In this document: in pieces, positions 16,743 through 32,534 of the stretch
Numbering within the stretch: position 1 is the stretch's first letter
Layout: every line of letters starts with the position of its first letter
Assembly: GCA_963924565.1 (NCBI GenBank)
Contig: OZ004611.1
Coordinates: forward strand, 23,436,001 to 23,500,000
Origin: Ascidiella aspersa
Lineage: Eukaryota
Length of the DNA: 64,000 nt
Direction: 5' to 3'
Notes under the pieces: model-generated
Seen by the model: only the letters and a program-made list of their open reading frames with translations
Databases searched by the model: none
What the model was told of the DNA's origin: nothing
Program-made: the position numbers and the translations under genes

Positions 16743-17350
16743 ATAGCACCTATCAAGAAGCGATAGGTTGGGAAGACCAGCCCATGAACTTTGTGAATTG
16801 CATCAGATATACTCGGAGTGTTTTATGGACCTGATTGAAAAACAAACATAGAAAGCGTCGGTAATGTATTTGCATAATTAAAACGGCCATTTCTAAACAG
16901 CATAGTTACAGGGCTGTTTTTGTAAGAAAGTTAAAAGTTTTGAAGAGATCCAACATATAATTTCTTCCCAATCGCTTTCAAATTGTTGACAACAAATATA
17001 TGCGATATAGTTTCAGTATTAAAAAATTGGACCCTAAGGACTATTAGTCCGGGAGCTAGCAGAGATTTAAATAGCATGTGGTAGTACAAAAGGTTTGACT
17101 ATTTAGAGCATAAAGGGCCCCACATGGACCCCAAAAGGCCGTTCCTAAGTTATGAATTTGGTGCGTATCAAAGTAACTCGCGACAAAATGTTGTTTGTTC
17201 GGGCCGATGTTCCGTCGATTCTAATCTTTCTTATCTTTCAGAATGTTTAGCACGGTGCCGCTGGCGGTTAGCAACCTAGAGTGACAAATAGGCCCCAAGG
17301 CGTTACTGAAATCTCGATTGCCCGCCTTCGAAAATCAAAACCGCTGAATC

Positions 17351-20300
17351 ATGCCGACGTCATCGCCGCCTTACGCCGCCTGGGCAGCAGTCCTCGTTCT
17401 CGTGACGTCACGATGCTGTCTCGGCATCAACGTCACGGAAAAGTTCGTCGCTGCCTCGTATCCCCGTTCCAGCGAGAACCGTTCGCCGAATCTCGGCATT
17501 GCGGGACTTTACATTTTTCCGAGGAGTAACTCTCAGAAGGTAAACCTTTCACGTGTGGATAACAAAGCGTAAAACACTTATACTCAATAATTTTGTGTTT
17601 TTTTATCTTTATGGAGAATAATGTGCACAAAAGACTGAAAACGAAAATCATTAAAACTGTTGGTTTCGTAGTGGAATATAGTTATCACCAAACGATAAAA
17701 AACAGAAGATAATTGGAAACTTTTGAGTAGTTTGCATCTGTAAGCTTTTGTAGGCTCCTACTTTTGCTTTTGTTATATAGTAATTACAGCAACAGCAAAA
17801 CACGTAGTCAACGTTTCGAGAGCTAAATTGAAAGCGATTTAGGAAAGATTTAAAACGAACAAACATTATTTATCTAACTTCACAAAGTTGTCATTCAATG
17901 GAAAATAATAACCCAGGGCCATTTGTCTGAACAATATACGTCCTCGACATAATTTTCACCAGAAAACATTTTGAGCGCTTTCATATTGGTGCCACATTTA
18001 GACAAGTTCAGAGAGGACATTACAATAACGACTTTGCGTAAATACTCCAGTGGTTCGCAACCGTTTTTTTTGTTCAATTGGTAAGCTTCTTGATAAAACT
18101 ATTTGTGAGCGATTAGAGACCATTATATCAAATGACATTTTTCCAAATGTTTTAAGTTAATTGTGTTGATCCAGTTCCATTTATAGTAATATTTCAGTAA
18201 AATGCTCAACGAAATTTCCAATTGGGGTGCCGAAATCTATTTATTTTTTTAGGGCTGCCCTAAGCCATAAAAGATTGAGAATCATTGATATACTACATCG
18301 TTCATTTAAAAACTCTTGTTTTCGAGTGAGTTGGCTAAACGAAACTTTGTTGCTCAGGTGAAGGATTTCTTTCAAAACAGCGGAGGCCTGTTTTTGTACA
18401 ACCAAGACAACTTCGAAGAGGTGGAAATCCAAGTGCCGTCGCGCGAAATTGAGTCGGGACGGAAAATAATCGAAATAGAGCGTCCCATTGAAGTGGTCGG
18501 CATTCCGCAGATGCAAGAAAGGTTGGGTGCTCGATTAATTAAGAGTTTTTGCTATTTGTAATGGCCGCTATGGGGTTGCTCAATAATAACTGATCGCGGC
18601 CGATACCCGATACCAAGGGATATAGTTTAGGTACTCAACTAAAACTAGGATGATACTGGTCACGCTACCAAATTGGTCTGTGCATTTTAGCCTTTTATGC
18701 GATCCAAATTCGAAAGATTAAACCTGAAAACGCTTTACATACACAACAAAAAACAAATAGACTTTCTAATTCAAATAGAATTTTCGGGTTATTATCTATA
18801 AAATTATAACCTTTGCACATATTATTTTGAACAATTTTGCTTATTTGGCCATGGTTAACGACTACGCTCGACACAAATATGCACCTGCATGCCCAAGGTC
18901 ATGTGTTCAAACCTCACGCGGATCATCCAAGTCTTAGGTAACAAAATGGATACTTATTTGCGTTAAAAGCAAATTGGCGTTTTATTTACCGCGCCTATAG
19001 CTGACGCAACTTTTTGCGTGGATCCATTGGTTCAATAAAATTTACTTAGCGGACAATTTTTTAAAGATAAACGTCCTTGCAATGAAAATAGCTTAAAGAA
19101 GTATCACAACAAAACACAATAAAACATACACAGAGTGGTGAAACCAAAGGCAAGTTTTGAGATGTTTTCATTGTTGCACTAAATTCCATTTACCTATTCT
19201 GGGTTGGATTCAAAACCTATATCGCTCGCGGACTCCCTAAAGTTGTTACATGCACCCTTATTGGCCCGCGAACCCCTCTTTGGTGACTCTATACTGTTTT
19301 TGCTGTTACTTTATACTGGTTTTGCCGTTTCTCGTGTCTACTTATTTAAGGCGTAGGGTCCTAGGTTTGCATATGGACGTAAGCAGGTAGATAAAAGATG
19401 GCGCACTGCTATATATTCGCGTTTTAGTTGATATTCGTTTGTTTCGCTTACTAACATATTTGTATAAATTGTATTTGCTTTAACTCCAATTGCTTGTTTT
19501 CTAGTCTAAAATACCTGTCTGAAGAAGTAGCCATGTATGAAAACGGCCACGACGTTGAATTGGTAACACCTTACACTTTTAAACTTAAAGCCTGCATTTG
19601 TGTTTGGCTCTCAGTGAGATTGTGGGCAAACGTACGAACCACACCTGCCAAGTGAGGAAGCCCTACACCTGCAAGAAAATCCTCCGCACGGCCTATCAAG
19701 GATACTGCCGGATGGGATTTTACAACAGGCCGTGCACGAGGTAAGGTCGACCGTTATTACTTTGATATTAGAATTTAGGCCAGGGCTATATGGAGTTGGA
19801 GTCAGGCTTGGGACTCGACAGGGTGGGTTTATTAGTATGGCGTCCGATGTGCGCTTACGCACTAGCAAGTTACGGAAAAGATGAGGCTGTAAGTTGTAAA
19901 GGTGGAACAGCATAAGGTGAAATATTTTCGACCAACGCATGGGGGGCAAAAAGTTTGAACTTTTTTGTTCAGCTTTTGCCATTGTATTAACTGTCTTAAA
20001 TATTTTTTTTTAAATTAACTGCTGAATACAAATAACAATGCTATAGCAAACCGTTTCGAGGAGCAACTGAATGACTGTTAACGCAATACTTAAAAAAACA
20101 TTTCAAAGAGCAACTGTCTAAAATTAGTAAAACTACATTAACGTATAGTAAATCTAATATTAACTATACAATACTACATCGTTTGTGATTTAACAGTGAC
20201 CTTCAATGACAAGTTGAAGGTGTGGCATGCCTGTGATCGACTGTTGTGGTACTACTCATAAATGCTTAAAACAAAACAAATTATTAGAAGTAAAAAAATT

Positions 20301-23300
20301 ATAAATGTTTGGGGGGCGATGGCCCCCCAGGCGCCCCTTGGCTACGCCCATGTTTTGTTTGTATTTCCGTGGAAAACCTAAGGCGTAATACAGTCGATAA
20401 ACTTTCGGTGCAACATTGCGCTTTCAGATTTCGAAATCAGTTGGTAGACGATACTTGCCACGCAACGTTCAACGAATGCTGCGAAAACTATGTGCTTGGC
20501 GCCAGTGGATTTTGTGAGCTCGAAGGATCAGGTGAGGCAAAAGAAAACGACGACTGAAATGCTCTTTCCTGGCTACCATACGCTGCAAAAATAAAAATAA
20601 ATAATGACAATTTAATAAACATTTTTTAACATAGGAGTAACGTCATTTGGCATCGGATCCAATCACGACATATTTTGTCCAACACATTTGGTTTAAGTAT
20701 CAGACATCCCTAAATGAATATTTTTTACCGTATGGAATACTTTTGGCAGAGGAAATAATAGAAGGAAATAATAGAAGGGTCAAAAATAGAGAAGAGTAAT
20801 TTTCAGTCTATAATTGACGAAAAATTAATAGAAGACGATTTGTGTAAGGGGTAAATAGGACTACCAATTTATCAAAATTTTATACGCCTAATATTTATTC
20901 CAAGGGGTTAAGTGTACAGCACAGCCTCAAGTCAAGAATAGTTTTAATCTCCTCACGTAAAATGATATGTTTCATATGCTGACGCTACCAGGCATCATAG
21001 TACCCTATAAACATAAGCTCTTTGGGTACTTATTTAATGTGAGGATATTTGTTCTTAGGTAGCGTATGCGGTCCTAGGGTGATCACGAACAGTTCCGGCG
21101 TCCTGACTTCGCCAGGCTACCCGAAAGAATACGGGGAGGACCTAGACTGTAGCTGGGTGATCCGAGGACCTCCGAGATCGCGAGTGATCATGCAATACGT
21201 GGACGTGAAAATTGAAGACGGATTGTGAGTTTTTACCACTTATGTTTGTTGTACATTCGCGCCTATGCGACAAACCTTCATCGGAGCTTTTGGACGCCCT
21301 GATGAACACGATTTAGATTTAGAGCAGAGTGGCCCTGGTATTGCTTTTCAGTAGTGGCCGGAGCAGTTAGTAAAATCACACCACAACCGTTGTTTTTATT
21401 CTTGACCACCATCTGCACAAGTAAAAATGTTCGAAGTATTTTAAATTAATGCGCTTAACAACAACTTATAACGAAAACAGTGCATTTGAATATTAGCTAT
21501 TACTCTGCAGGATTATAGTTCAGGAAAATATTATTTAAAAAAATATTAAAGCGTTGAGTCGCAAACCTTGAATAAAAAGTACTTCTAGTTGATAAAATTA
21601 TTTATTATTATTATTTACATTGGGATCTAAGCCTGTTCCAACACTTCTATTTGTCGATCTTATTATAAGATCGACAATTATCTTAGTAGCTGAACTAAGT
21701 TACAATTTCCAAATAAAACTACAAAGGTTATAAAGTGATCTAAAACAACTTTTTTTCCATCGAAGCAGAATATTATAGTTACGCAAATTTGCATCATTAG
21801 TTTTGCTTGGAATCGTAATTCGAATTGTTTAGTATTCTGCATTTGTTGAATAAAGTTGTTTTAGATCTTTTTTGCAACCTTTGTGGTTTTGTTTGAAAGT
21901 ACTAACTTAGTTAGACTAAGCTGAACCACTTTTGAAAGTAAGGAATCTCCCACAGACAATGAAGTTGGACTACTGAGATAATTTTTTAACTTAAATAAAA
22001 AAGAGATTTGGGCACGAGGACAGATGTCCCCGCTAAGGTAAGGTGACCGTCCGTTAAATATTAGGAAATTCCAAAACCAATTACACTTGTCGAAACCACG
22101 TTTCCAAGTGGCAGCAGCGATGTTGTCAACTTTTAATTGAATCCTAAATGTTTTGTCGCGGGTGTGTTGCGGCTTAATTACTGCTCTAGACATACGTTTG
22201 GACATTCAATGAGGAAAATTAAACAAAAAGAGGATTAGCCTGGTTTATTTTGGGATGCGGTGTCTCGTTAAGGGATGTTTACTTCGTAAACGTGACCATG
22301 TTTACCCACGGTTTACGAAATCGGTTTACGAATTTAAGCGTTCCAAAACATATAATTTATTTAGTGCAGCACATTATCGTGCATGCAGTAAAAGTTAATA
22401 TTGTGTAAAAAATAAGAAACGTATGTAAAAAATATAACGAAATTCGTCATAAACGTAAGAAATTGTATTTTGCCACCCTTGAAACTATAGTAATGGTTCT
22501 TAACCTTTATAGGGTCCTTTGTTCGTGGGTGGTAGTACATTTAAGTTAGGCTACTGTTTCTCTTTTGGTAAATTATGTCTGACCTATCTAACATATCAAT
22601 AAATATCTGTAGAATATCTAATAATAATTCGATTTTAAATAAACACAAAAAATATAGTACCTAATTTCAATCCCACCATAAAATTTACAACAAACTACCC
22701 CAGATAACCACAGGATAATAAGCGCTGCCAAGGCCCATCCTTTAACAAAAAACACCGCATGTACTTCAAGTCGACACATTTTAAACGTTAACACAATGCT
22801 ATTTACCCTCTGTTCGGCTTTGACGTTCTTACCACGTCTGACTACAACCTCCAGCCTTTATAATTTATTTAATGCACCTTAAGATTTATTCGAAACGTTT
22901 AAAATCCTATACCTACTTCTGCATGGGCTTTTATATTTATTCTACGTCCAACTGCAATCTTCACTCGTTATGCTCAAAAATGGAATGTATATACTTTTTC
23001 AAATAATTTATCGACTGTTTTATCGGATTTTAATCGCATCACTACGACGAAAGGCGAAGAAAAAAACAAATGATCCTTTAATTTTCGCTTCAGCGGAGTT
23101 TGCAACTATGGCGAGGGGCACTGTTACGACAACTGCCAGTTCGACTGGGTGCGCATATCCGGAGTGTCGGGAGCCTCAAAGCCGCGGACTCTATGTGGAA
23201 GCATCGTGCCAATGACTTGGTTTCGAAGCGTCTCGAACGAAGCGACCGTCTCGTTTCATTCTGACGACTCCAACGGCGGAAGGGGATTTAAGCTGGTTTT

Positions 23301-26300
23301 TAACATCGTCGCAGGTATAGATCGGCGTTTTGAGATGCATAATTTCAATGGTATGAGCTCGGGATGTCCGATAATATCAGATTGGAATCGATACCCGATG
23401 CTTTGTAGTAGTGATACTCGTCCGATACTAGGGTGGTATCGGGCCCGATCCGATATCAAATTAATACACGCATTTAAACATGATTTAACTTCCAACGCAA
23501 CGATTCAAATTTGAAAGGTAAATTTCTCACAAAAGTATATTAGGTATCGGGCATTCCTAGTATGAAGGTATAGTGAACTGCAATACCTACTGAAATCTTC
23601 GTTCATGGAGAACTCGCTTTGAATGCATAAATATTGTAAACTGTAATATGGGTTCGCCTAAAAACACAAGTTTTTTTGTTCAATTTTTATATTTTACCAG
23701 TCAATTTAAATGTCTTAAACGACACAATTGGGACTTGATATTGTTTAGTACACATTAATATTGTTTGTTTAACATTGACCATATTATTTTGTATAAAAAT
23801 TCGAATACCACATTTGAGGCAAGATACTACATAAAACAGTTGACTTATTAGAGCTCAAATTCACACGTTAAGAGATCTGTTTCCCCTTTCTCTCGCTACA
23901 ACACCAGTGAGCCATACGTTACTGTTTGTGTCGCTGACAAGAGATGCTTATTTTCACCAGAAAACGACATCATTCCTCTGAGGAGCTGCACACTCGGCCG
24001 GGTCTGGAGGCTGTGCCATCGCGAGTGCGCCCTGACCTGCGATTCCTTGGCGCCGAGCCGATTCGGAACCTGGAACATTTGCACTAAAAGTGCGGTAGGC
24101 TCCGTGGCACCGCTGGTCTTCTCGCATTTATCTGTCTGTCTGTATATGCTTGCAGCTAGTGCACGCTTAAATTCCGAGAGGCAATAATGATCGTTTTTTT
24201 TTCGAGATCGGTTTTCTTGTAAGGGGTAAAAAGGTAGCCTGCCTAATTCGTTTGACGATGGATAAAACAGGACAAATGAGACAATATTCACGGCGTAATG
24301 CATAACAAGGCATTTTCGACATTATAATTGTCTAGAGCGATAAAAGGATACTGCTTTTTGAGTGAACATTTGATCGACTTAACTGCAGGGCCTTTCTGTT
24401 TATCAGTGTGCTTTATTTTAGCTAGCATTCCTAAAATCATGGCTTCACTGCCTTTTACGAACTAAAAGCGCAGAAACGCATAGAAAAATTAAAAAATTGC
24501 AGATTTTTGTTTCTTCGGGTTAAATATGCTACTTAACCTTAAGCTGGCTGATTTAAACTCTTAAGCTTTCGCGCCTACAGCTTTTGTATAGCTTTTTACG
24601 CAAACGTTGCGCTGTATTGGTAACTCGACACTTAGTTCGGGATGTTATGACGTAATAGGTGACGGCACGAACCATCTTGTAGATGCCTCGCAGATGTCTG
24701 ACGTCACGTGCGTGCCGGGATGCGTCTGTCCCGACGAACGACCCATTTGGCATCAAAACAAGTGCATCAAAATGGAGGACTGTCAACGTAAGTGGTGGTT
24801 ACGTACTGTGGCATGAATTGGCGTACGGTTATTTCTCGACTCGCTCCTCTCTGAGCCTGCATAGCTCAGTTGGTAGAGCGACGGTCACGGTAAGGCCGGA
24901 GGTCGTGAGTTCGAGGATCACTAATGGTTGTTTTTCTGGCATGCCTTACGTGCATTTATCGACAGATTTGGTGAGTCTGACATGGCTTTTCGGTGTACTA
25001 AGATACGCAAGCCGTAATCGTTGGCTAACTAGCAACTTCAGGAGGGCTAGTTGACAGTTGCTGAACACATATGTGTATTAAGTGTAAGTTTTCAGATATC
25101 CGTTCAGCGGCGTAATCGGTGTTCTTTCCAAAAAAAAAAATGAATTCAAAATTCGAAACACTGCGAATAACTATAGAAATGTAGGAAAATCAAAATATAC
25201 GAAAAACTACATATTGTGGCCACATAGTATCTCCTTGTTTTGTGTATTTGTATGAGTTTGTGCATTTTGTCCTGTTTTGGAGAAAATTTTGCTGCGCACG
25301 TCGGTTGCGGAACAGTTGCGGATGCTTTAGTGTGCATAAACGATTGTGCCAACGGATAAATGAACAAAAATATGAATCTATAAGAACAAAAGCTTTTCAG
25401 GCACCCTTGAGCATTAGAAGCGTTGATAAATTACCTAACAAAATCTATATAAAGCAAACTATAAAAGTAAAACTTTTATTGCAGGTTCGAGATTTAAGTG
25501 CGGGATACCGTTGGATCAACCGTCACCAAAGATTATCGGTAGGTTTTTGTAATCTGAGTAAAATTAGGGATATCTTATTATCCAACGCGAAATATTGCGG
25601 TCTGATGTGCCAAGGAACTATAATGCGCTGTTTGGCAAAAAAAATACTGTACCCACTGTTTGTGTCAATTGTCTTCCAAGAACCTTACCATCATACTAAC
25701 GTTTGTTGAGCCTTATTCGTCCGATATTATCCCTCAAAAAAGTTGTTTTAATGTAAATAAACTGCAATCGGCGACCCTACTTGGTTATGCCCTTAACGCA
25801 TATAGCTAGGGCTCTATAGCTCATTTTGTGAAACAATAGCTACGAATCTTGCTGAAGATTGTATTTTCGGTCATTGTTTTGTTTTAAAAATCGTAGTTGA
25901 ATGATTAAAGGTCAAAAAGATAAGATTAGCTTGATTATGCATTGAAATGTGTAAAAGGTCGAGTAGACCGACGTCATCATAAATTAGATGTTTCGATACG
26001 AACCTGTATCATCTTCATTTAATGTGACTGAGCAGTAAATCAACGCCTTACTGAAGATGACACAACTTCGTGTCGAAACGTCTTAATTAAGATGATGTCG
26101 ATCTATACTAGACATTTTTGGCTTTGCAATTCATTTTATCAAGCTACATTACAGATCCGTGCACATAGTGTAACCAAAGTAAGATTATTATATTTAGGCA
26201 AATGTGCAAGGATGCTCAGTAAACCTCCGATGTTTATCTCCGATATCCAGTACAGTTATTACCGTCTTCCCAATGCGCCGCTGTACACTCATCAGACGCT

Positions 26301-29300
26301 TTTGTATACGCAGGAGGCAAAACGGCAAGGGACGGAGCCTGGCCGTGGATGGTACAAATCACAACAAACAACCAGTATTCGGACTGCGGCGCCACTCTGG
26401 TGTGCTCTGATTGGGTGATAACGGCCGCGCACTGCTTCCTGGATAAAGAGACGTGGTCTATGTAAGTTCAAAGTACAGATGCGTGGCCTCCGGTATAACT
26501 ACTATGTGTTCAGTCGATTTGGATGGCGAGGTTTAGATGCCAGAGCCCTTATTATGAGAGAAAACGACTTGAATTTTTATGACGTTATGTGGCTGTTTTC
26601 TGTGATAAAAGTTTAATAATCGTCGATTTAATTTGGTTTAGGTACGTAACATAGGCGTGATGTTATCTAGAGCAGGGGTCCGCAAATACGGGGTCGCGAC
26701 CCAATTTGGGTCGCGGGACCATTCAGCTTGGGTCGCGAAAGCCTTATTAATAGAGTCCTATATTTTGTTCTTGTTAATAGAGGCCTATATTTTAAGTTTT
26801 CTAATGTTTCCATTAGTACACTGAATTGTATACAAGATAGCCGTCTTACTTTGAGCGCGACTAAAATTGTCACGCGAAATATATACACTAAGCCCCGTAA
26901 AACGTCGTGAGTGTTCGTTCGATCCAGGTGATGGCAAAGAGCGCTTGCATTCCAACACTATTTTGGCCATTACCACCCCAAACTGATCTGCTTACCGCAA
27001 TCTGGCTTTATTTCTTGGTATATGATTTTTAAAAAAACTCTCTTTCATTTTTTTATCCCGTTTCTGTAATCAAAGCGTCGTAAGCACGTTGTTCTCTTCG
27101 TTACATCGTGTCCCAAATCCTTAGATGCGAGCCTTATAATGTTGAGTTTCCTAAATCGATTGCGATGAGACGTCGGGCATTTTTAGTGATTCGCGCAAAA
27201 AAATCATTACACACCTTGCCAGTAATTATTGCACTAAGAAAGCGCAATAGCGGACGTGTGTTGAAGGGGTTATGGCGGGGAATTGGTGGGGCTGCAAGCC
27301 TGCAACCCATATTGGTTGCCAAATCATATTTGTCATCCGAATGAGATATCAAAAGTAGTAAAATTCAAGGCTTCTTTTCAGTTGTGTTACAGAACCCTTT
27401 CTCTTAAAAAACGCATTTTCTCTTTAAAAACGCAACATATAGATCAGTCTTAATGAATAGAAACACAATAAATTACTGTGTTTTTTTAGCAAAGCTATTG
27501 CATTAAAAACAACTCGAAGTAGTTGGGTCGCGAGACCTCGGTACTAGCAATTTTGGGTCCCGCCAAAAAGTATTTGCGGACCCCTGATCTAGAGGAGGCA
27601 GAATATTTTAGAGAAATCAGCATTCAAATACACAAAGGCACAAACGGCAATACACTTATTTCTTGTTTTGCACAGAGCTAAAAAATGGACTGTATATAGT
27701 GTACAAGACTGAGTGAGCACGGCTTATTAGTTAACTGATAGTATTATGACATTTCCCTACTCCCTTGCTGTGTATATAGGCAGGGCACTTTTTCTAAGCT
27801 ACGATGCCATTATTTTTTATTGACGTGTGTCGCGTTTTTTTTAGTTTCTTGATGCAACGAAACCAAACTCATGTACCTTTGCCCCGCAGGCCGGAAAAGG
27901 TGGACAGACTGCTCTATTGGTTCCACCTTGGCAAGTACTGGAAGCACGAACAAGAGGACGGGCGCAGGTCGGAGGTAAGAAACGCAAGCTATCGAGGCAC
28001 GAAAGCAAGGGTGGCCAACCAGTCAGTGCCCAAGAGCACCACTTCTGCTGTGTTAACCGCAAAGTGCCACACCTTACAAATGTACAGAAATAGCTCTAAA
28101 AAGCCGTTTTTTGCTCAGCCTAATTTATTATGAATGTTACTCACCAAAATGATAGTGAAAAAGTTACGAGACATTACTGTCATGTCTATTCTAGTACTTG
28201 GCGGGTCGACTTAACTACAATCTAAAAAAAAAAATTAAAGAGCCGCATAAAACCGATCGAAAAGCCGCGTGTGGCTCGCAAGTCGCGTGTTGGCTACCCC
28301 TGCACTAAAGGGTTTGTTTACGTCGGCATTCGCTGCCATATAACACAACGTGGCGCGTCAAAACAGATCGACGTCGGCGTATATTTACGTTGGCGGCGAA
28401 TGCGTTGCTTGACGCGCAACAGCTGGACCTCGCATCCGCGGCTCGACCCTTGGGTCTTGGCCACGTATAGCTGGCATTTCGCTACCACTATGCTCACGGT
28501 GCTGTGTGAAGGATTTCGTCGCTATCTTTATTGTTACAATCACGGGGGGACCGTTCAGTAACTTTGCGAACCACAGAAAACGATTTTGCAGTTAATGCGA
28601 CTGTTAACCTTCTTTGTAAAGGGTATTTTTCAAGATTTTTCAAAAGTGACTGTCGACTGCTAGTTCGTCCGCCTGTTTTTTTTAGCGTGTAACACAATTT
28701 GGGTGTTTCCATCGTAGTTTAAATATTAATTTTTGTCTGACAACTCAAGACCAATCGGATAGTGTGCAAAAGTATAATGTTTTCTCAATATTCTTTAGCG
28801 TTGAATATTTTCTGTAAAATTACTTTTAAGATCAAAGTCACACCATGGCTAAAATCGGATCAGAACAATACCAACCTAGTATCGAACGGGTCTAGATACG
28901 ACCACTTGGCACCTGGTATCGTACCTCATACTATCGGACACTCCTACATTATAAACCTTGAAAAGTTGTGCAAAAAAAAAAATAATAATACCGCATACCA
29001 CAACGCATATTGTTTGGGTTAGGGTGCGGGTTAGCGTTTGGGTGAGGGTGGGTCAAGTAATATTATGTTTGTTATTAATAATAACTTGACCCACCCTCAA
29101 CCAAACGCTAACCCGCACCCTAACCCAAACAATATGTGTTGTGGTATGCGGCATTTGAAGAAAATTTTTTTTTTATTAATTTTTACGTACAATAGTGAAA
29201 GAGCGCCAAACCTTTTTCTAAAGGCCTATAGAGCAAAGCAGATCATCCTCCACCCCAACTATGATTTCGACACCGACACCAACGACATAGCCCTAGTCAA

Positions 29301-31682
29301 ATTGGACGGCTACGTGAAGAACATCGACAGCATTCGGCCGATCTGCCTTCCCGACTTACTTGACCTAAACGTGAACACCGAGCGCCAAATGAACGCGACC
29401 GAATTCCGACCCAACTTCAATGACACGTGCATCGTGACCGGCTGGGGAGCCACCCGAAGTAAGATCGAATGTTAGGCGGAAAAAAATAAATGTAAAAGGG
29501 GTTCTGAAGCGATTTAAGATTGTTGGCGTTAGTATCGCCGCGCCTTAAAACGTTAGGTTAATTGAATGGTAGAAATTAGCGTTCGTCAGAAACATCGCGC
29601 TACCAGTTTTTAATAAGCTACACGCTGACGTATTATAGTCAGTCATATTTATCTTTTATCACGCAACCTGAATCCATATCATTTTGCCTTATTTTACCAA
29701 AAACAACCGTCTTGCCAATTGGAAGTTAAAAAGACTATGTCAGGCGTAAATTTTTAAACGACAATTTGTCCGGATTAACCAAAATATGGCAACTCATCTC
29801 TCAATTAGATGTCTTGTTTTTTTTTTGTGTTTTTTACCCATATTTTAACAAAACACTTGGTTTACCTGTATAAGAGTGTCATTTTAACGCGTGCATCCTT
29901 AAATATGATTAGGACATTACATGAAACACATTTAAATGACAATCATTGCCTTTAGGAAACGCAGTGAAATACAACGACCATGACCTTTAGATGGACACCT
30001 CAACAGATAGTTGTGACATAATTATGATAAATAAACTTAAACATCGTTAACTTGCAGACGTTGGGCCAACGGCATCGAAACTGAAGGAATTGCGAATGCC
30101 AATGAAACCCGACAAGCAATGCAGCAGCTACAACTCGTACGTTTGGCGGAAGATGATTTGCGCCGGTGGAATTGTCGACAACGATACGTGCAAGGTTTGA
30201 CAACGATACGTAAAAAGAGCGCCATTTTCCAATGTTGTAAACAATTTATTTTAAAATGATGTCCCAGTCAAGTCGTTAGTGAAAAATCTTAAGTCCAAGT
30301 CAAGTCATTTTTGAAAAATAACAAGTCAAGTCCAAGGCATAATTAGAACAAGTTAAAGTCCATTCCTTCTTATAATATTAAACGTTAAACTATTAAAATT
30401 GGTAAATTAGCCCGATTATGAACAATACCCTGTACTAAAAAATCCAAAAATCCAACGTATTGAAAAATGTTTGACGTGCAAATCTTAAGATGGATAACTC
30501 AATTTTATAATGAAAAATGCTTAGCGAAAACACAATATTTCAACCCAAGTCCTTTTTCCAAAAGACTCAAGTCAAGTTGAGTTTGTCCAAAAACTTAGGT
30601 CAAGTCATTTGAAACCAGTGACTTTAAGTGTACTCAAGCCAAGTCATTGACATAAGTCATTACAACACTGCCATTTTGCGTCAGTATTTAAGAAATGTCT
30701 AACAGCATTACTGATTATAATGCTTGGTTCGAATCTTCAACTTTGTTGCATCATCGATTTGGCAAACCTGAGAACTCACAGTTTTTAGTTTCGGGACAAA
30801 ATTACAAGCATTTATTTAATGTCCTTTTTTAGTTCATAAACATCGCGTGATTTGTGCATCCTATATATATGTTGCAAACAACACAACAAACAAGTAAAGT
30901 ATTTAAAAATCTCCAAATATTAGCAGCACCCACTTTAAAGAAATATATCTGGCACAATATATTCTGTATTTATGACTCGGAACGAATTTTTAAATACTTA
31001 TTGACTAAATAAATCAGCATAAGCACAACATACCATTTTACAAAGTCACCATGTATAATAATTAATGAAATGTCTGTCTTAAAAATCCATCTAGCAACTC
31101 ACCGTAGGAATACGATTAAGCGCAGCTTCCATACGTGTTAGTTACAATCAGGGCTGCGGAGGCGGTTAAAAATAACTCGAGTCCGACTCCGGCCAAATGT
31201 GCGATTTTAATGAGTCAAATTAACAGCCTTACCCATTTATGTTTGAACAAACAGCAATATAATTTATCCACCCGCAATACATGCTTGAAAAATTTTCCAC
31301 TATATATTCTATTTCCACTATTTACAGTGTGTGGCATTATCAGTGTTTAAATTCAGTACTGCGCATGCGCACGTCGGACTCGGTACTCGGGTAGTCTTAC
31401 ATGGTCTTCCTCGAGACCCGAGTCGGACCCCTGCAAAACAAACCGACTCCGTCGAGTCCCGAGTCCGACTCCGTAGCTCTCGTTACAATCGTCAAAATTT
31501 CGTTTCAGGGAGACAGCGGCGGCCCCTTTATGTGCAGAAGGAATCGACGTTGGTTCCTAGACGGCGTTACCAGTTTTGGCGACGACTGCGGAACTAAAAA
31601 GCCGGGAGGCTACACGAGAGTCAGTAACTACATCCCGTGGATCCGTCGCTATATTGGATTTAACTGTGGCAAGCCTACGTAA
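17351..31682 (+). CDS. Secreted mosaic trypsin-like (S1A) serine protease: signal peptide-EMI-CUB-TIL-trypsin, about 710 aa
   Basis: Exons 17351-17539, 18358-18521, 19615-19740, 20428-20531, 21059-21224, 23094-23314, 23961-24094, 24592-24787, 25485-25538, 26314-26461, 27890-27974, 29224-29458, 30058-30194, 31509-31682; all GT-AG, phases match, 2133 nt total. Activation site CG...PK-IIGG; triad motifs TAAHC, NDIAL, GDSGGP; D189 (NDTCK). CUB motifs [15 protein letters not shown] and FHSD.S...GF. Confidence 0.9.
23359..23560. mobile_element. MITE of the TAGGGATGTCCGAT family
   Basis: Ends cgggatgtccgata / tatcgggcattccta with internal ccgata/tatcgg units; related copies near 18570, 20650-20712, 28750-28945, 48775-49182, 51123-51390 and 53156-53220. 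Confidence 0.65.
24855..25090 (+). mobile_element. tRNA-derived SINE (tRNA-like head 24855-24930)
   Basis: A box TAGCTCAGTTGG, D arm, anticodon-like arm CGGTC/GGCCG, B box GTTCGAG; acceptor stem does not pair, so not a functional tRNA; followed by about 160 nt of body. Confidence 0.65.
25953..26119. mobile_element. Penelope-type inverted repeat carrying two minimal hammerhead-like motifs
   Basis: Plus arm CTGAAGA-T-GACAC(aacttc)GTGTC-GAAA-CG-TC (26051-26082); mirrored minus arm aTGAAGA-T-GATAC(aggttc)GTATC-GAAA-CA-TC; the two arms are about 70-bp imperfect inverted repeats. Confidence 0.6.
26673..27586. mobile_element. Non-autonomous hAT (Charlie/Buster-type) element, 914 bp
   Basis: Perfect 17-bp TIR CAGGGGTCCGCAAATAC; perfect TSD ATCTAGAG (26665-26672, 27587-27594); subterminal GGGTCGCG repeats. 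Confidence 0.93.
28006..28302. mobile_element. hAT MITE
   Basis: TIRs CAAGGGTGGCCAAC / GTTGGCTACCCCTG; TSD CACGAAAG / CACTAAAG. Confidence 0.8.
28991..29151. repeat. Near-perfect hairpin with telomere-like G-rich arm
   Basis: 67-bp arms (28991-29057 and 29085-29151) with about 2 mismatches and an AT-rich 27-nt spacer. Confidence 0.9.
30230..30670. mobile_element. hAT MITE with (CAAGT)n subterminal repeats
   Basis: TIRs CAATGTTGTAA / TTACAACACTG; TSD CCATTTTC / CCATTTTG. Confidence 0.8.
31149..31481 (+). mobile_element. hAT MITE with GACTC/GAGTC repeats
   Basis: TIRs CAGGGCTGCGGAG / CTCCGTAGCTCTC; perfect TSD GTTACAAT (31141-31148, 31482-31489). Confidence 0.85.
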
Positions 31683-32534
31683 ACTGACCTAGTCTGTTCA
31701 AATGCGCTTAAGCATCGCTTTCCGGATCCAGGCCATTTCCGCGTCCAAAAAAACGCTAAATTTTAACCTGCCAATATTTTTAGAAGCAGATTAAAGAAAG
31801 GCTACTAAATCCTGAGATTTGACTTGTTTTCTTATGTTATGAGATATACTTAATTAAAGTTACTTGTAACAGCCAACTTAACTGCCTAACTAGGCTGAGT
31901 TTTTTCTGCATACCAGCTATACCCGACAAAACAGTTGCAAGTGCTCTTGCCATTTGAAGTTTGTCTTTACCTTATTTTCGCAGCATTTATGTTCCACAGC
32001 GCCACTTTTCGCACTTCCTGGATCTTTTGGTTTTCTGTACATTTTATTTTTTTATAATTATGTGGAGTGCTTGACTTTACTGCTGACAAAATTAAACCAG
32101 TTGTTGAGACTGGAAATATTGTTAAACTACATTACGTTTCAGTATACCTTACAATTTTCACTTCTATCCCAAAATCACAAATACGCTTGATAAATGACTT
32201 AAATTTCTATATTTCCACATTTTAAAGCATTAACTGTAGATGCGTTATGTTTACCCTGTGCATGGCGATTTTTTCTTGTGCCTTTCTTTTCTGCTTTTGT
32301 TAAATACGCCTGGCCATTTTATTGCCAAATAAACGTTGCTATTGCGGCTTAAAATCCAAATAAAAGCTCTTTCTTTAAAGAATGCGCAAGTATTGAAAAT
32401 ATTGTCTTAGTGCATCGTTTTTAAACAACAAAGGTGAGACTAAATCATGCAGTAGTAGGCCTACAATATTATTCGTAAGCCGATAACCAACATTTTGCGA
32501 ATATTTGCGCATTTTTTTGTGGAAACGATACATT

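Follow-up and report, generated by a model that had tools for sequence, protein, structure and literature searches.

An ascidian gene that probably encodes a secreted mosaic trypsin-family protease with CUB and TIL domains and an unclassified eight-cysteine module

Mosaic trypsin-like proteases drive the complement, clotting, fertilization, and gut cascades of vertebrates. Tunicates, the closest relatives of vertebrates, build their own sets of mosaic proteases by exon shuffling. Here, we analyzed a gene on the + strand of a 64,000-nucleotide stretch of the Ascidiella aspersa genome (the window; contig OZ004611.1 of GenBank assembly GCA_963924565.1, positions 23,436,001 to 23,500,000), where it occupies positions 17351 to 31682, counted from the first letter of the window. 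We consider it likely that this is a single-copy ascidian gene of 14 exons that encodes a secreted S1A trypsin-family zymogen of ~686 residues, in which an N-terminal eight-cysteine module, a CUB domain, and a TIL domain precede the catalytic domain.

Several described systems come close to this protein in part of its build. Enteropeptidase (TMPRSS15), TMPRSS6, and matriptase offer the nearest solved catalytic domain. They share with the ascidian protein a CUB domain in the noncatalytic chain and a basic↓I-(V/I)-G-G activation site (the arrow marks the bond that is cut) with a linker cysteine. Unlike these enzymes, the ascidian family is without a membrane anchor and without SEA, LDLa, MAM, and SRCR domains, and it has a signal peptide, the eight-cysteine module, and a TIL domain. 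The vertebrate egg-coat proteases ovochymase-2 and ovochymase-1, which are also secreted mosaics of CUB and trypsin domains, are the next-best full-length matches (356, 339, and 276 bits). However, their precomputed Pfam families are CUB and trypsin type only, with no TIL, and they trail the ascidian orthologs by ~820 bits or more. The complement proteases MASP, C1r, and C1s (CUB-EGF-CUB-CCP-CCP-protease) likewise are modular, recognition-linked S1 enzymes with CUB domains, and MASP-1 is a solved relative, whereas the ascidian protein is without EGF and CCP domains, has one CUB domain, and has the TIL domain and the N-terminal module in addition. With other TIL domains (PF01826), which occur in Ascaris-type inhibitors and in the D-assemblies of VWF and mucins, the ascidian TIL shares ten cysteines in the TIL order. 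It differs from them in falling below the Pfam cut-off when scored alone and in having 16 residues inserted after Cys5, where the template TIL domains have three. No TIL domain was found upstream of a protease domain in any of the 152 other proteins compared. The EMI domain (PF07546) of EMILINs, multimerins, MEGF10/Draper, and TGFBI/periostin resembles the N-terminal module in being cysteine rich, single copy, and N-terminal to the other modules, in its "CC-x-G-Y/W ... C" end, and in its predicted antiparallel strands. The ascidian module differs in its eight cysteines, in their spacing, and in the ~125 residues in front of it, and it gave no significant profile, PDB, or fold match.

We built the gene model from open stretches, GT and AG sites, and phases. 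The model comprises 2061 nucleotides, or 687 codons with the stop, and runs from start codon to stop codon exactly over positions 17351 to 31682 (Table 1). All 13 introns are GT-AG, the phases are consistent throughout, and there are no internal stops. The short coding pieces are separated by introns of 0.5 to 2.7 kb, a eukaryotic layout. Database searches were done per exon, with full-length database orthologs as proxies for the joined protein. A full-library search with exon 12, which encodes the catalytic Asp, returned 367 proteins at E ≤ 0.001, of which the best 150 were listed. Among these 150 matches, we found three orthologs, each with one full-length match at the right place: CAK8671722 / XP_076820999 from Clavelina lepadiformis (P0011 in our searches), XP_002130348 from Ciona intestinalis (P0018), and XP_039268389 from Styela clava (P0104), species which we take to represent three ascidian orders. 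Their lengths are 685, 685, and 735 residues, compared with the 687 summed codons of the model. Automatic annotation has named the Clavelina protein "plasma kallikrein-like," the Ciona protein "enteropeptidase," and the Styela protein "enteropeptidase-like."

By tblastn, the Clavelina and Ciona orthologs correspond to exons 3 to 14 in order (12/12), and the Styela ortholog corresponds to exons 4 to 14 (11/12). When we searched with a profile of the three aligned orthologs, they themselves scored 1178 to 1252 bits, and the next match was a fish ovochymase-2 at 356 bits. These proteins therefore constitute a family of their own, and each of the three ascidian proteomes contains a single member. 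Exons 3 and 4 match only themselves in the 308-Mb Ascidiella assembly, and thus the gene is single copy here as well. A profile of the ortholog N-terminal modules, searched against the same genome, had exon 4 as its best match (positions 34 to 71, E 0.017) and exon 3 as its second (positions 3 to 40, E 0.079). The exon set is beyond chance because it is collinear with three database proteins and because exons 4 and 3 are the top two genome matches of this profile. The sequence-only reading of this DNA had proposed one gene for a secreted mosaic protease, and the 14-exon model and the collinearity bear this out. The peptide that it had quoted is present as the translation of exons 3 and 4, which are joined through a split codon, AGA, for Arg. 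It was also correct that exons were missing from the list of start-to-stop open reading frames; the TIL exon at 23961 to 24089 and the activation exon at 25485 to 25538 exist only as stop-to-stop open stretches.

Table 1. Exons of the Ascidiella protease gene (positions in the window) and the evidence that places them
Exon	Position	Strand	Encoded feature	Evidence
1	17351-17539	+	Signal-peptide-like N-terminus	First ATG of its open stretch; GT donor; ends in phase 0
2	18358-18521	+	Poorly conserved pro-region (putative)	AG/GT sites and phases; phase 0 in, phase 2 out
3	19615-19740	+	N-terminal eight-cysteine module, first half (N-H-T-C, four Cys)	tblastn, P0011 residues 123-158, E 2e-04; ortholog profile
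4	20428-20531	+	N-terminal module, second half (C ... CC-E-N-Y ... G-F-C-E)	tblastn, P0011 residues 160-189, E 6e-04; ortholog profile
5	21059-21224	+	CUB, first half	Pfam CUB 1-49, E 5.3e-10; aligns with 3/3 orthologs
6	23094-23314	+	CUB, second half, and insertion with two extra Cys	Pfam CUB 52-110, E 6.7e-05; tblastn, Ciona ortholog, E 7e-15
7	23961-24089	+	TIL Cys1-Cys5	Pfam TIL 1-26, E 0.012, 16.1 bits; boundary from collinearity with P0011 residues 325-368 and phase 1/1
8	24659-24787	+	Inserted loop and TIL Cys6-Cys10	Pfam TIL 26-55, E 6.9e-04, 20.2 bits; tblastn, P0011, E 1e-14
9	25485-25538	+	Linker Cys and activation site (↓IIG); 54 nucleotides	Weakly aligns with activation peptides of 3/3 orthologs
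10	26314-26461	+	Trypsin start, catalytic His (TAAHC)	Pfam Trypsin 4-46, E 1.2e-11; tblastn
11	27890-27974	+	Trypsin domain	tblastn, P0011 residues 480-505, E 1e-07; phases consistent
12	29224-29458	+	Catalytic Asp (NDIAL), "PICLP" Cys, family-specific insertion	Pfam Trypsin 71-130, E 1.8e-10
13	30058-30194	+	Trypsin domain, including Asp six residues before the catalytic Ser	tblastn, E 2e-12
14	31509-31682	+	Catalytic Ser (GDSGGP), tail with extra conserved Cys, stop at 31680-31682	Pfam Trypsin 178-220, E 4.1e-12; tblastn, E 5e-21

Pfam was run on ten exon translations, and seven of them matched: two to CUB, two to TIL, and three to Trypsin. The other three, from exons 1, 3, and 4, had no match to any family at E ≤ 10. 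The two halves of the CUB domain (PF00431), which together make up a whole domain with its four canonical cysteines, scored 40 and 23.6 bits, each above the 21.4-bit cut-off, and the orthologs scored 49.7 to 60.6 bits. The two extra cysteines of the CUB insertion are invariant in the three orthologs. So are the Tyr, Glu, Asp, and Asp positions of the domain, which we take to be the Ca2+-binding CUB signature. The Trypsin match (PF00089) of the orthologs covers positions 1 to 220 at E 5e-46 to 4e-56, and all three motifs of the catalytic triad are invariant. The activation bond, ...K↓IIG(G), lies across exons 9 and 10 with a split GGA codon for Gly and a linker cysteine upstream. In the orthologs, the aligned bonds are K↓ILGG, K↓IIGG, and K↓IVGG. 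The bond thus appears to be of the standard zymogen type with a linker cysteine. The Asp in exon 13 occupies the position in the S1 pocket that presumably confers Arg/Lys specificity. Furthermore, two extra cysteines are invariant in the orthologs, one within the motif "LVCS(D/N)W" and one in the C-terminal tail, and they may form a pair. Among solved structures, those closest to the catalytic domain are enteropeptidase (E 6.9e-42), plasma kallikrein, TMPRSS6, MASP-1 (E 9.5e-30), and plasminogen, all of them regulatory enzymes and not bulk digestive ones. The CUB domain and the intact trypsin domain that the sequence-only reading had named are present, with Pfam matches in the exons and all triad motifs in place.

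Single sequences gave the TIL domain scores under the Pfam cut-off of 24.5 bits. The two exon halves reached the values in Table 1, the Styela ortholog reached 21.3 bits, and the Clavelina and Ciona orthologs had no TIL (PF01826) row at E ≤ 1. The genome has 116 TIL matches at E ≤ 0.01, all of them outside the window. We took 30 of these 116 matches as reference TIL domains and kept 29 with at least eight cysteines in the translation (L017 was dropped), each scoring 38.5 to 56.6 bits. With hhalign, the region of the orthologs matched the 29 genome TIL domains with a probability of 98.2 % (E 4.6e-14; template 1 to 54), with 10/10 cysteines in register, whereas the N-terminal module, used as a control, reached 0.9 %. 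The TIL identity stands because this profile-profile match aligns all ten cysteines. Conversely, a hidden Markov model of the 29 TIL domains matched 3/3 orthologs at E 5e-06 to 1e-05. Altogether it matched 6 of the 158 proteins compared, namely the three orthologs plus three proteins that cluster with them. Neither the TIL domain nor the N-terminal module was found in the remaining proteins of these 158, a set drawn mostly from the 150 proteins closest to the Asp exon.

The TIL domain has been altered at one place. In the hhalign alignment, an insertion of 16 residues immediately follows Cys5, at a place where most reference TIL domains have three residues, and in the window ~19 residues separate Cys5 from Cys6. 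In Ascaris-type inhibitors, the short Cys5-Cys6 loop holds the reactive bond. We therefore read the module as what is probably a TIL fold with a rebuilt Cys5-Cys6 loop and not a canonical inhibitor. Thus, the suggestion that the protease carries its own inhibitor-like module was right about the TIL fold family, but 16 residues are inserted at the very site of the reactive loop. Elsewhere in the genome, TIL-encoding exons are densely packed in two stretches of contig 3 (G000:C3:30405414-30424748 and G000:C3:21809327-21820063).

We also considered other exon boundaries. For the two TIL exons, boundaries at 23961 to 24094 and 24592 to 24787 (phase 0/0), or an acceptor at 24636, were ruled out since NIC-x-K-S-D-G is continuous in the orthologs. 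We adopted 24089/24659 with phase 1/1 because it fits this continuous sequence. An alternative acceptor for exon 3 at 19591 agrees in phase, but its pyrimidine tract is poorer and its use would introduce an odd cysteine; we preferred the acceptor in Table 1, although use of the alternative may occur. For the activation exon, four open candidates with phase 1 at both ends terminate in a basic residue followed by I or V. Among them, the motif C-G...K-I-I is found only in the chosen exon 9 and in a longer version with the same donor. Another candidate, "SSRITN" at 24870 to 24926, was ruled out, as it lies inside a dispersed repeat and is without a linker cysteine.

The N-terminal module is present in a single copy, N-terminal to all other modules and ~100 residues after the leader. 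The module is conserved across the three orthologs, as are the activation site and the extra Cys. An N-x-T sequon directly before the first cysteine of the module is invariant in the orthologs. Near its C-terminal end, the module has CC-E-N-Y...G-F-C in the window and CC-x-G-Y-x(5)-G-Y-C in the orthologs. From the alignment of the three ortholog modules, AlphaFold predicted two hairpin arms of ~24 residues each and a small C-terminal hairpin, and the best of the five models had a mean predicted local distance difference test (pLDDT) of 83.8.

Is this module an EMI domain? The sequence-only reading had said so of exons 3 and 4, and we could not uphold it. Pfam EMI had no match at E ≤ 10 in either exon, nor did it match any of the three full-length orthologs at E ≤ 1. 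The module profile had no match at E ≤ 10 among PDB sequences, and fold searches with the module model found nothing. Five EMI matches exist in the genome, none of them in the window, and none of the eight nonself matches of the module profile falls at these five loci. Compared with the EMI pattern, the stretch before the CC is shorter. PMC11949838 describes the EMI domain as singular and N-terminal, with three disulfides and with two O-fucose sites on two antiparallel strands; our module has eight cysteines and lies ~125 residues from the N-terminus. On the other side, the module may be a genuine EMI domain that has diverged strongly, like those in EMILIN, multimerin, and MEGF10 or at the N-terminus of TGFBI/periostin, so that EMI-CUB-TIL-trypsin would be literally right; we lean against this reading but regard it as a serious possibility. 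EMI was the top of three weak Pfam families on the ortholog modules (E 1.4, in one of the three). Against the C-terminal halves of two EMI domains from the same genome, hhalign gave 21.2 % (E 0.001) over 20 columns around R...CC-x-G-Y, compared with 0.6 % and 1.2 % for the controls. In the orthologs, the end motif CC-x-G-Y-x(5)-G-x-C does not vary, and "CC" is given as the EMI hallmark in bioRxiv 10.64898/2026.05.13.724420. The predicted fold, too, would consist of long antiparallel strands. The nearest ESM Atlas cluster was a STAB2 fragment (0.78), which is a low-scoring lead only, and the Atlas otherwise gave no named cluster. A bona fide EMI exon of the genome weakly matched the N-terminal domain of TGFBI at E 0.7, and in that comparison the TGFBI domain also has an extra cysteine before the CC. 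Overall, the PDB returned for such EMI exons only weak TGFBI rows at E 0.7 to 1.1, or noise, and for exon 4 alone it returned spider-toxin noise at E 0.43. Since a genuine EMI exon matches only TGFBI there, the PDB is a poor yardstick for EMI, and the failed fold searches count for little. The module is best called an eight-cysteine, EMI-like, unclassified ascidian-family module, and at most EMI-like.

Two further readings concern the ends of the protein. In one, exons 1 and 2, and perhaps exons 3 and 4, are part of a separate transcript, or the gene actually begins at another place; the words "secreted" and "full architecture" would then not be established in this species. Exon 1 matched no Pfam family at E ≤ 10, neither exon 1 nor exon 2 has significant similarity to the Clavelina ortholog, and the RNA reads were examined over 19580 to 25579 only, short of the joints between exons 1, 2, and 3. 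However, the three orthologs themselves show little conservation over the N-terminal ~120 residues, and all three have a hydrophobic leader and a variable region ahead of the module within one protein. The placement of exon 1 rests on this leader, on phase, and on the summed length compared with the orthologs. The phases fit across exons 1 to 3 (0/0 and 2/2), the summed model has ~128 residues from the Met to the first cysteine of the module compared with 128 in the Clavelina protein, and exons 3 and 4 are collinear with the ortholog proteins. We therefore think it unlikely that the first exons belong elsewhere. The other reading follows the RefSeq names and takes the gene to be the ascidian enteropeptidase, the gut activator of trypsinogen. 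Beyond the names of the Ciona and Styela orthologs, it can draw on the catalytic domain, whose closest solved relative is enteropeptidase at the E value given above. Enteropeptidase has a membrane anchor and a SEA-LDLa-CUB-MAM-CUB-LDLa-SRCR heavy chain. Above the Pfam cut-offs, the orthologs have only CUB and Trypsin, with no SEA, LDLa, MAM, or SRCR domain, and at E ≤ 1 Pfam added only weak TIL or noise. Their N-terminus is a cleavable-looking leader and not a membrane anchor. Moreover, plasma kallikrein, TMPRSS6, and MASP-1 score nearly as well, and the Clavelina copy carries a kallikrein name. According to PMC7914634, the only paper found with the accession AK116731, Ciona does possess a trypsinogen whose propeptide has Asp-Asp-Asp-Lys, and AK116731 is its putative homologue of enteropeptidase, which may or may not be the present gene; the enzyme described there is transmembrane. 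Enteropeptidase orthology is not supported because the heavy chain shares only CUB among the enteropeptidase modules, and we consider this identity very improbable. The RefSeq names appear to reflect generic similarity.

Returning to the secreted 14-exon zymogen as the likely reading, several observations weigh against it. Exons 1 and 2 align with none of the three orthologs by tblastn, and their place is tentative. Structural support is weak: the module model comes from three sequences, the mean pLDDT of its five models ranges from 57.6 to 83.8, and the full-length AlphaFold model, with a mean pLDDT of 35.2, is uninformative. The Ca2+ signature, the Arg/Lys specificity, and the heavy-chain disulfide discussed below are each assigned by a general family rule. 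Transcript evidence is scarce as well. When ~6 % of one RNA run was mapped on 19580 to 25579, 42 reads mapped, most of them on an intronic repeat at ~24780 to 24979, and no splice joint in this interval reached the threshold of three reads. The remaining reads fell in the bins of exons 4, 5, 6, 8, and 9, and in every case the minus strand carried the first mate. Exon 4 had the highest depth of the run on unique sequence, 1.42, and small depths were also seen in the bins 20180 to 20379 and 24980 to 25179. In most stranded libraries, a first mate on the minus strand marks RNA from the + strand. The reads are compatible with low + strand expression.

The repeat that takes most of the RNA reads is a dispersed SINE-like (short interspersed nuclear element-like) repeat at 24820 to 24960, in the intron that separates exon 8 from exon 9; its head, of the type GCATAGCTCAGTTGGTAGAGC...GGTTCGAG, is tRNA-like. 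A first look at the genome gave 1634 candidates for it, and 39 of the 40 other copies that were scored are 84 to 87 % identical. ARAGORN and Rfam scans of 17000 to 32000 made no calls, for this repeat included. The repeat also has a huge depth in two other runs of unrecorded kind (X1 and X2), which cover most of the interval 19580 to 25579. In these two runs, the word depth of the intronic stretches 19780 to 20379, 21780 to 21979, 22780 to 22979, and 23380 to 23579 is 25 to 700 times the single-copy level, and these stretches are presumably other repeat families. Contigs from X1 and X2 differ from the window at exon positions 23262 to 23283 (CUB, exon 6) and 24692 (TIL, exon 8) and at 24636; the differences look like ordinary polymorphism between individuals.

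The search with the Asp exon also returned proteins outside the three orthologs. Two unnamed ENA fragments, P0007 (143 residues, from a contig of 1485 bases) and P0013 (123 residues, 846 bases), are 49 to 50 % identical to the Asp exon, family-specific insertion included, and probably represent the same gene from other ascidians or environmental samples. P0001 (4066 residues, 14 matched stretches) and other top matches are very long proteins with many tandem trypsin domains, which head the list because their matched stretches add up. Word-index protein searches with region 1 to 420 of the Clavelina protein and region 118 to 190 of the Ciona protein retained 1 of 1319 and 1 of 3 candidates, respectively, in both cases the query itself. 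In the literature, our search found no paper on this family, on an EMI/CUB or TIL/CUB protease architecture, or citing XP_002130348. The family is already in RefSeq for three ascidians, misnamed, and undescribed in the literature. The claim that no described protease joins EMI, CUB, and TIL holds to the extent that no paper was found; the proteins themselves were already deposited, and their EMI part was not confirmed.

How might such a protein work? The chain would begin with a signal peptide, followed by ~100 poorly conserved residues, the eight-cysteine module of ~65 residues, predicted to form mostly long antiparallel beta-hairpins, one CUB domain, and one TIL domain with 16 to 20 residues inserted between Cys5 and Cys6. 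After the TIL domain would come a short linker with one cysteine, the Lys↓Ile-Ile-Gly-Gly activation bond, and the catalytic domain with its His, Asp, and Ser. The protein would be secreted as a zymogen, and a cut after the Lys would create a new N-terminus and turn the enzyme on. The heavy chain may then be kept through a disulfide between the linker cysteine and the "PICLP" cysteine, which we take to be the rule in other mosaic S1 proteases. With an Asp before the Ser, the enzyme should cleave after Arg or Lys, and it could activate itself or be cut by another trypsin-like protease. The three noncatalytic modules may hold it on an extracellular partner or on the matrix, and hence it would be a local, regulated protease of the cascade type and not a bulk digestive one.

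A bolder version of this scheme would credit the protein with two features undescribed in any protease. One is an ascidian-restricted, disulfide-rich beta-hairpin domain of a new kind that would have no relation to EMI or else be its most diverged known member. The other is a TIL loop that serves as a latch or bait, with the enzyme self-inhibited until it is cut. The flexible TIL loop of ~20 residues, just upstream of the activation bond, would occupy or shield the active site, and a second protease or a bound ligand would release the enzyme. We regard this combination as a long shot.

The gene is real, and so are the CUB, TIL, and trypsin domains, three of the four named for it; ascidians share this architecture as a conserved one. 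The mosaic S1 protease is in itself a well-known kind. What is new is that a TIL domain and an unclassified cysteine module are joined to a CUB-protease and that this arrangement is conserved in Ciona, Styela, and Clavelina under mistaken labels of enteropeptidase and kallikrein. The practical weight is modest, and the gene is so far tied to no process. A correct description would guard against wrong conclusions on how the digestive and contact-activation cascades of vertebrates arose, and Ciona may offer a tractable case for the role of an inhibitor-type fold inside a protease.

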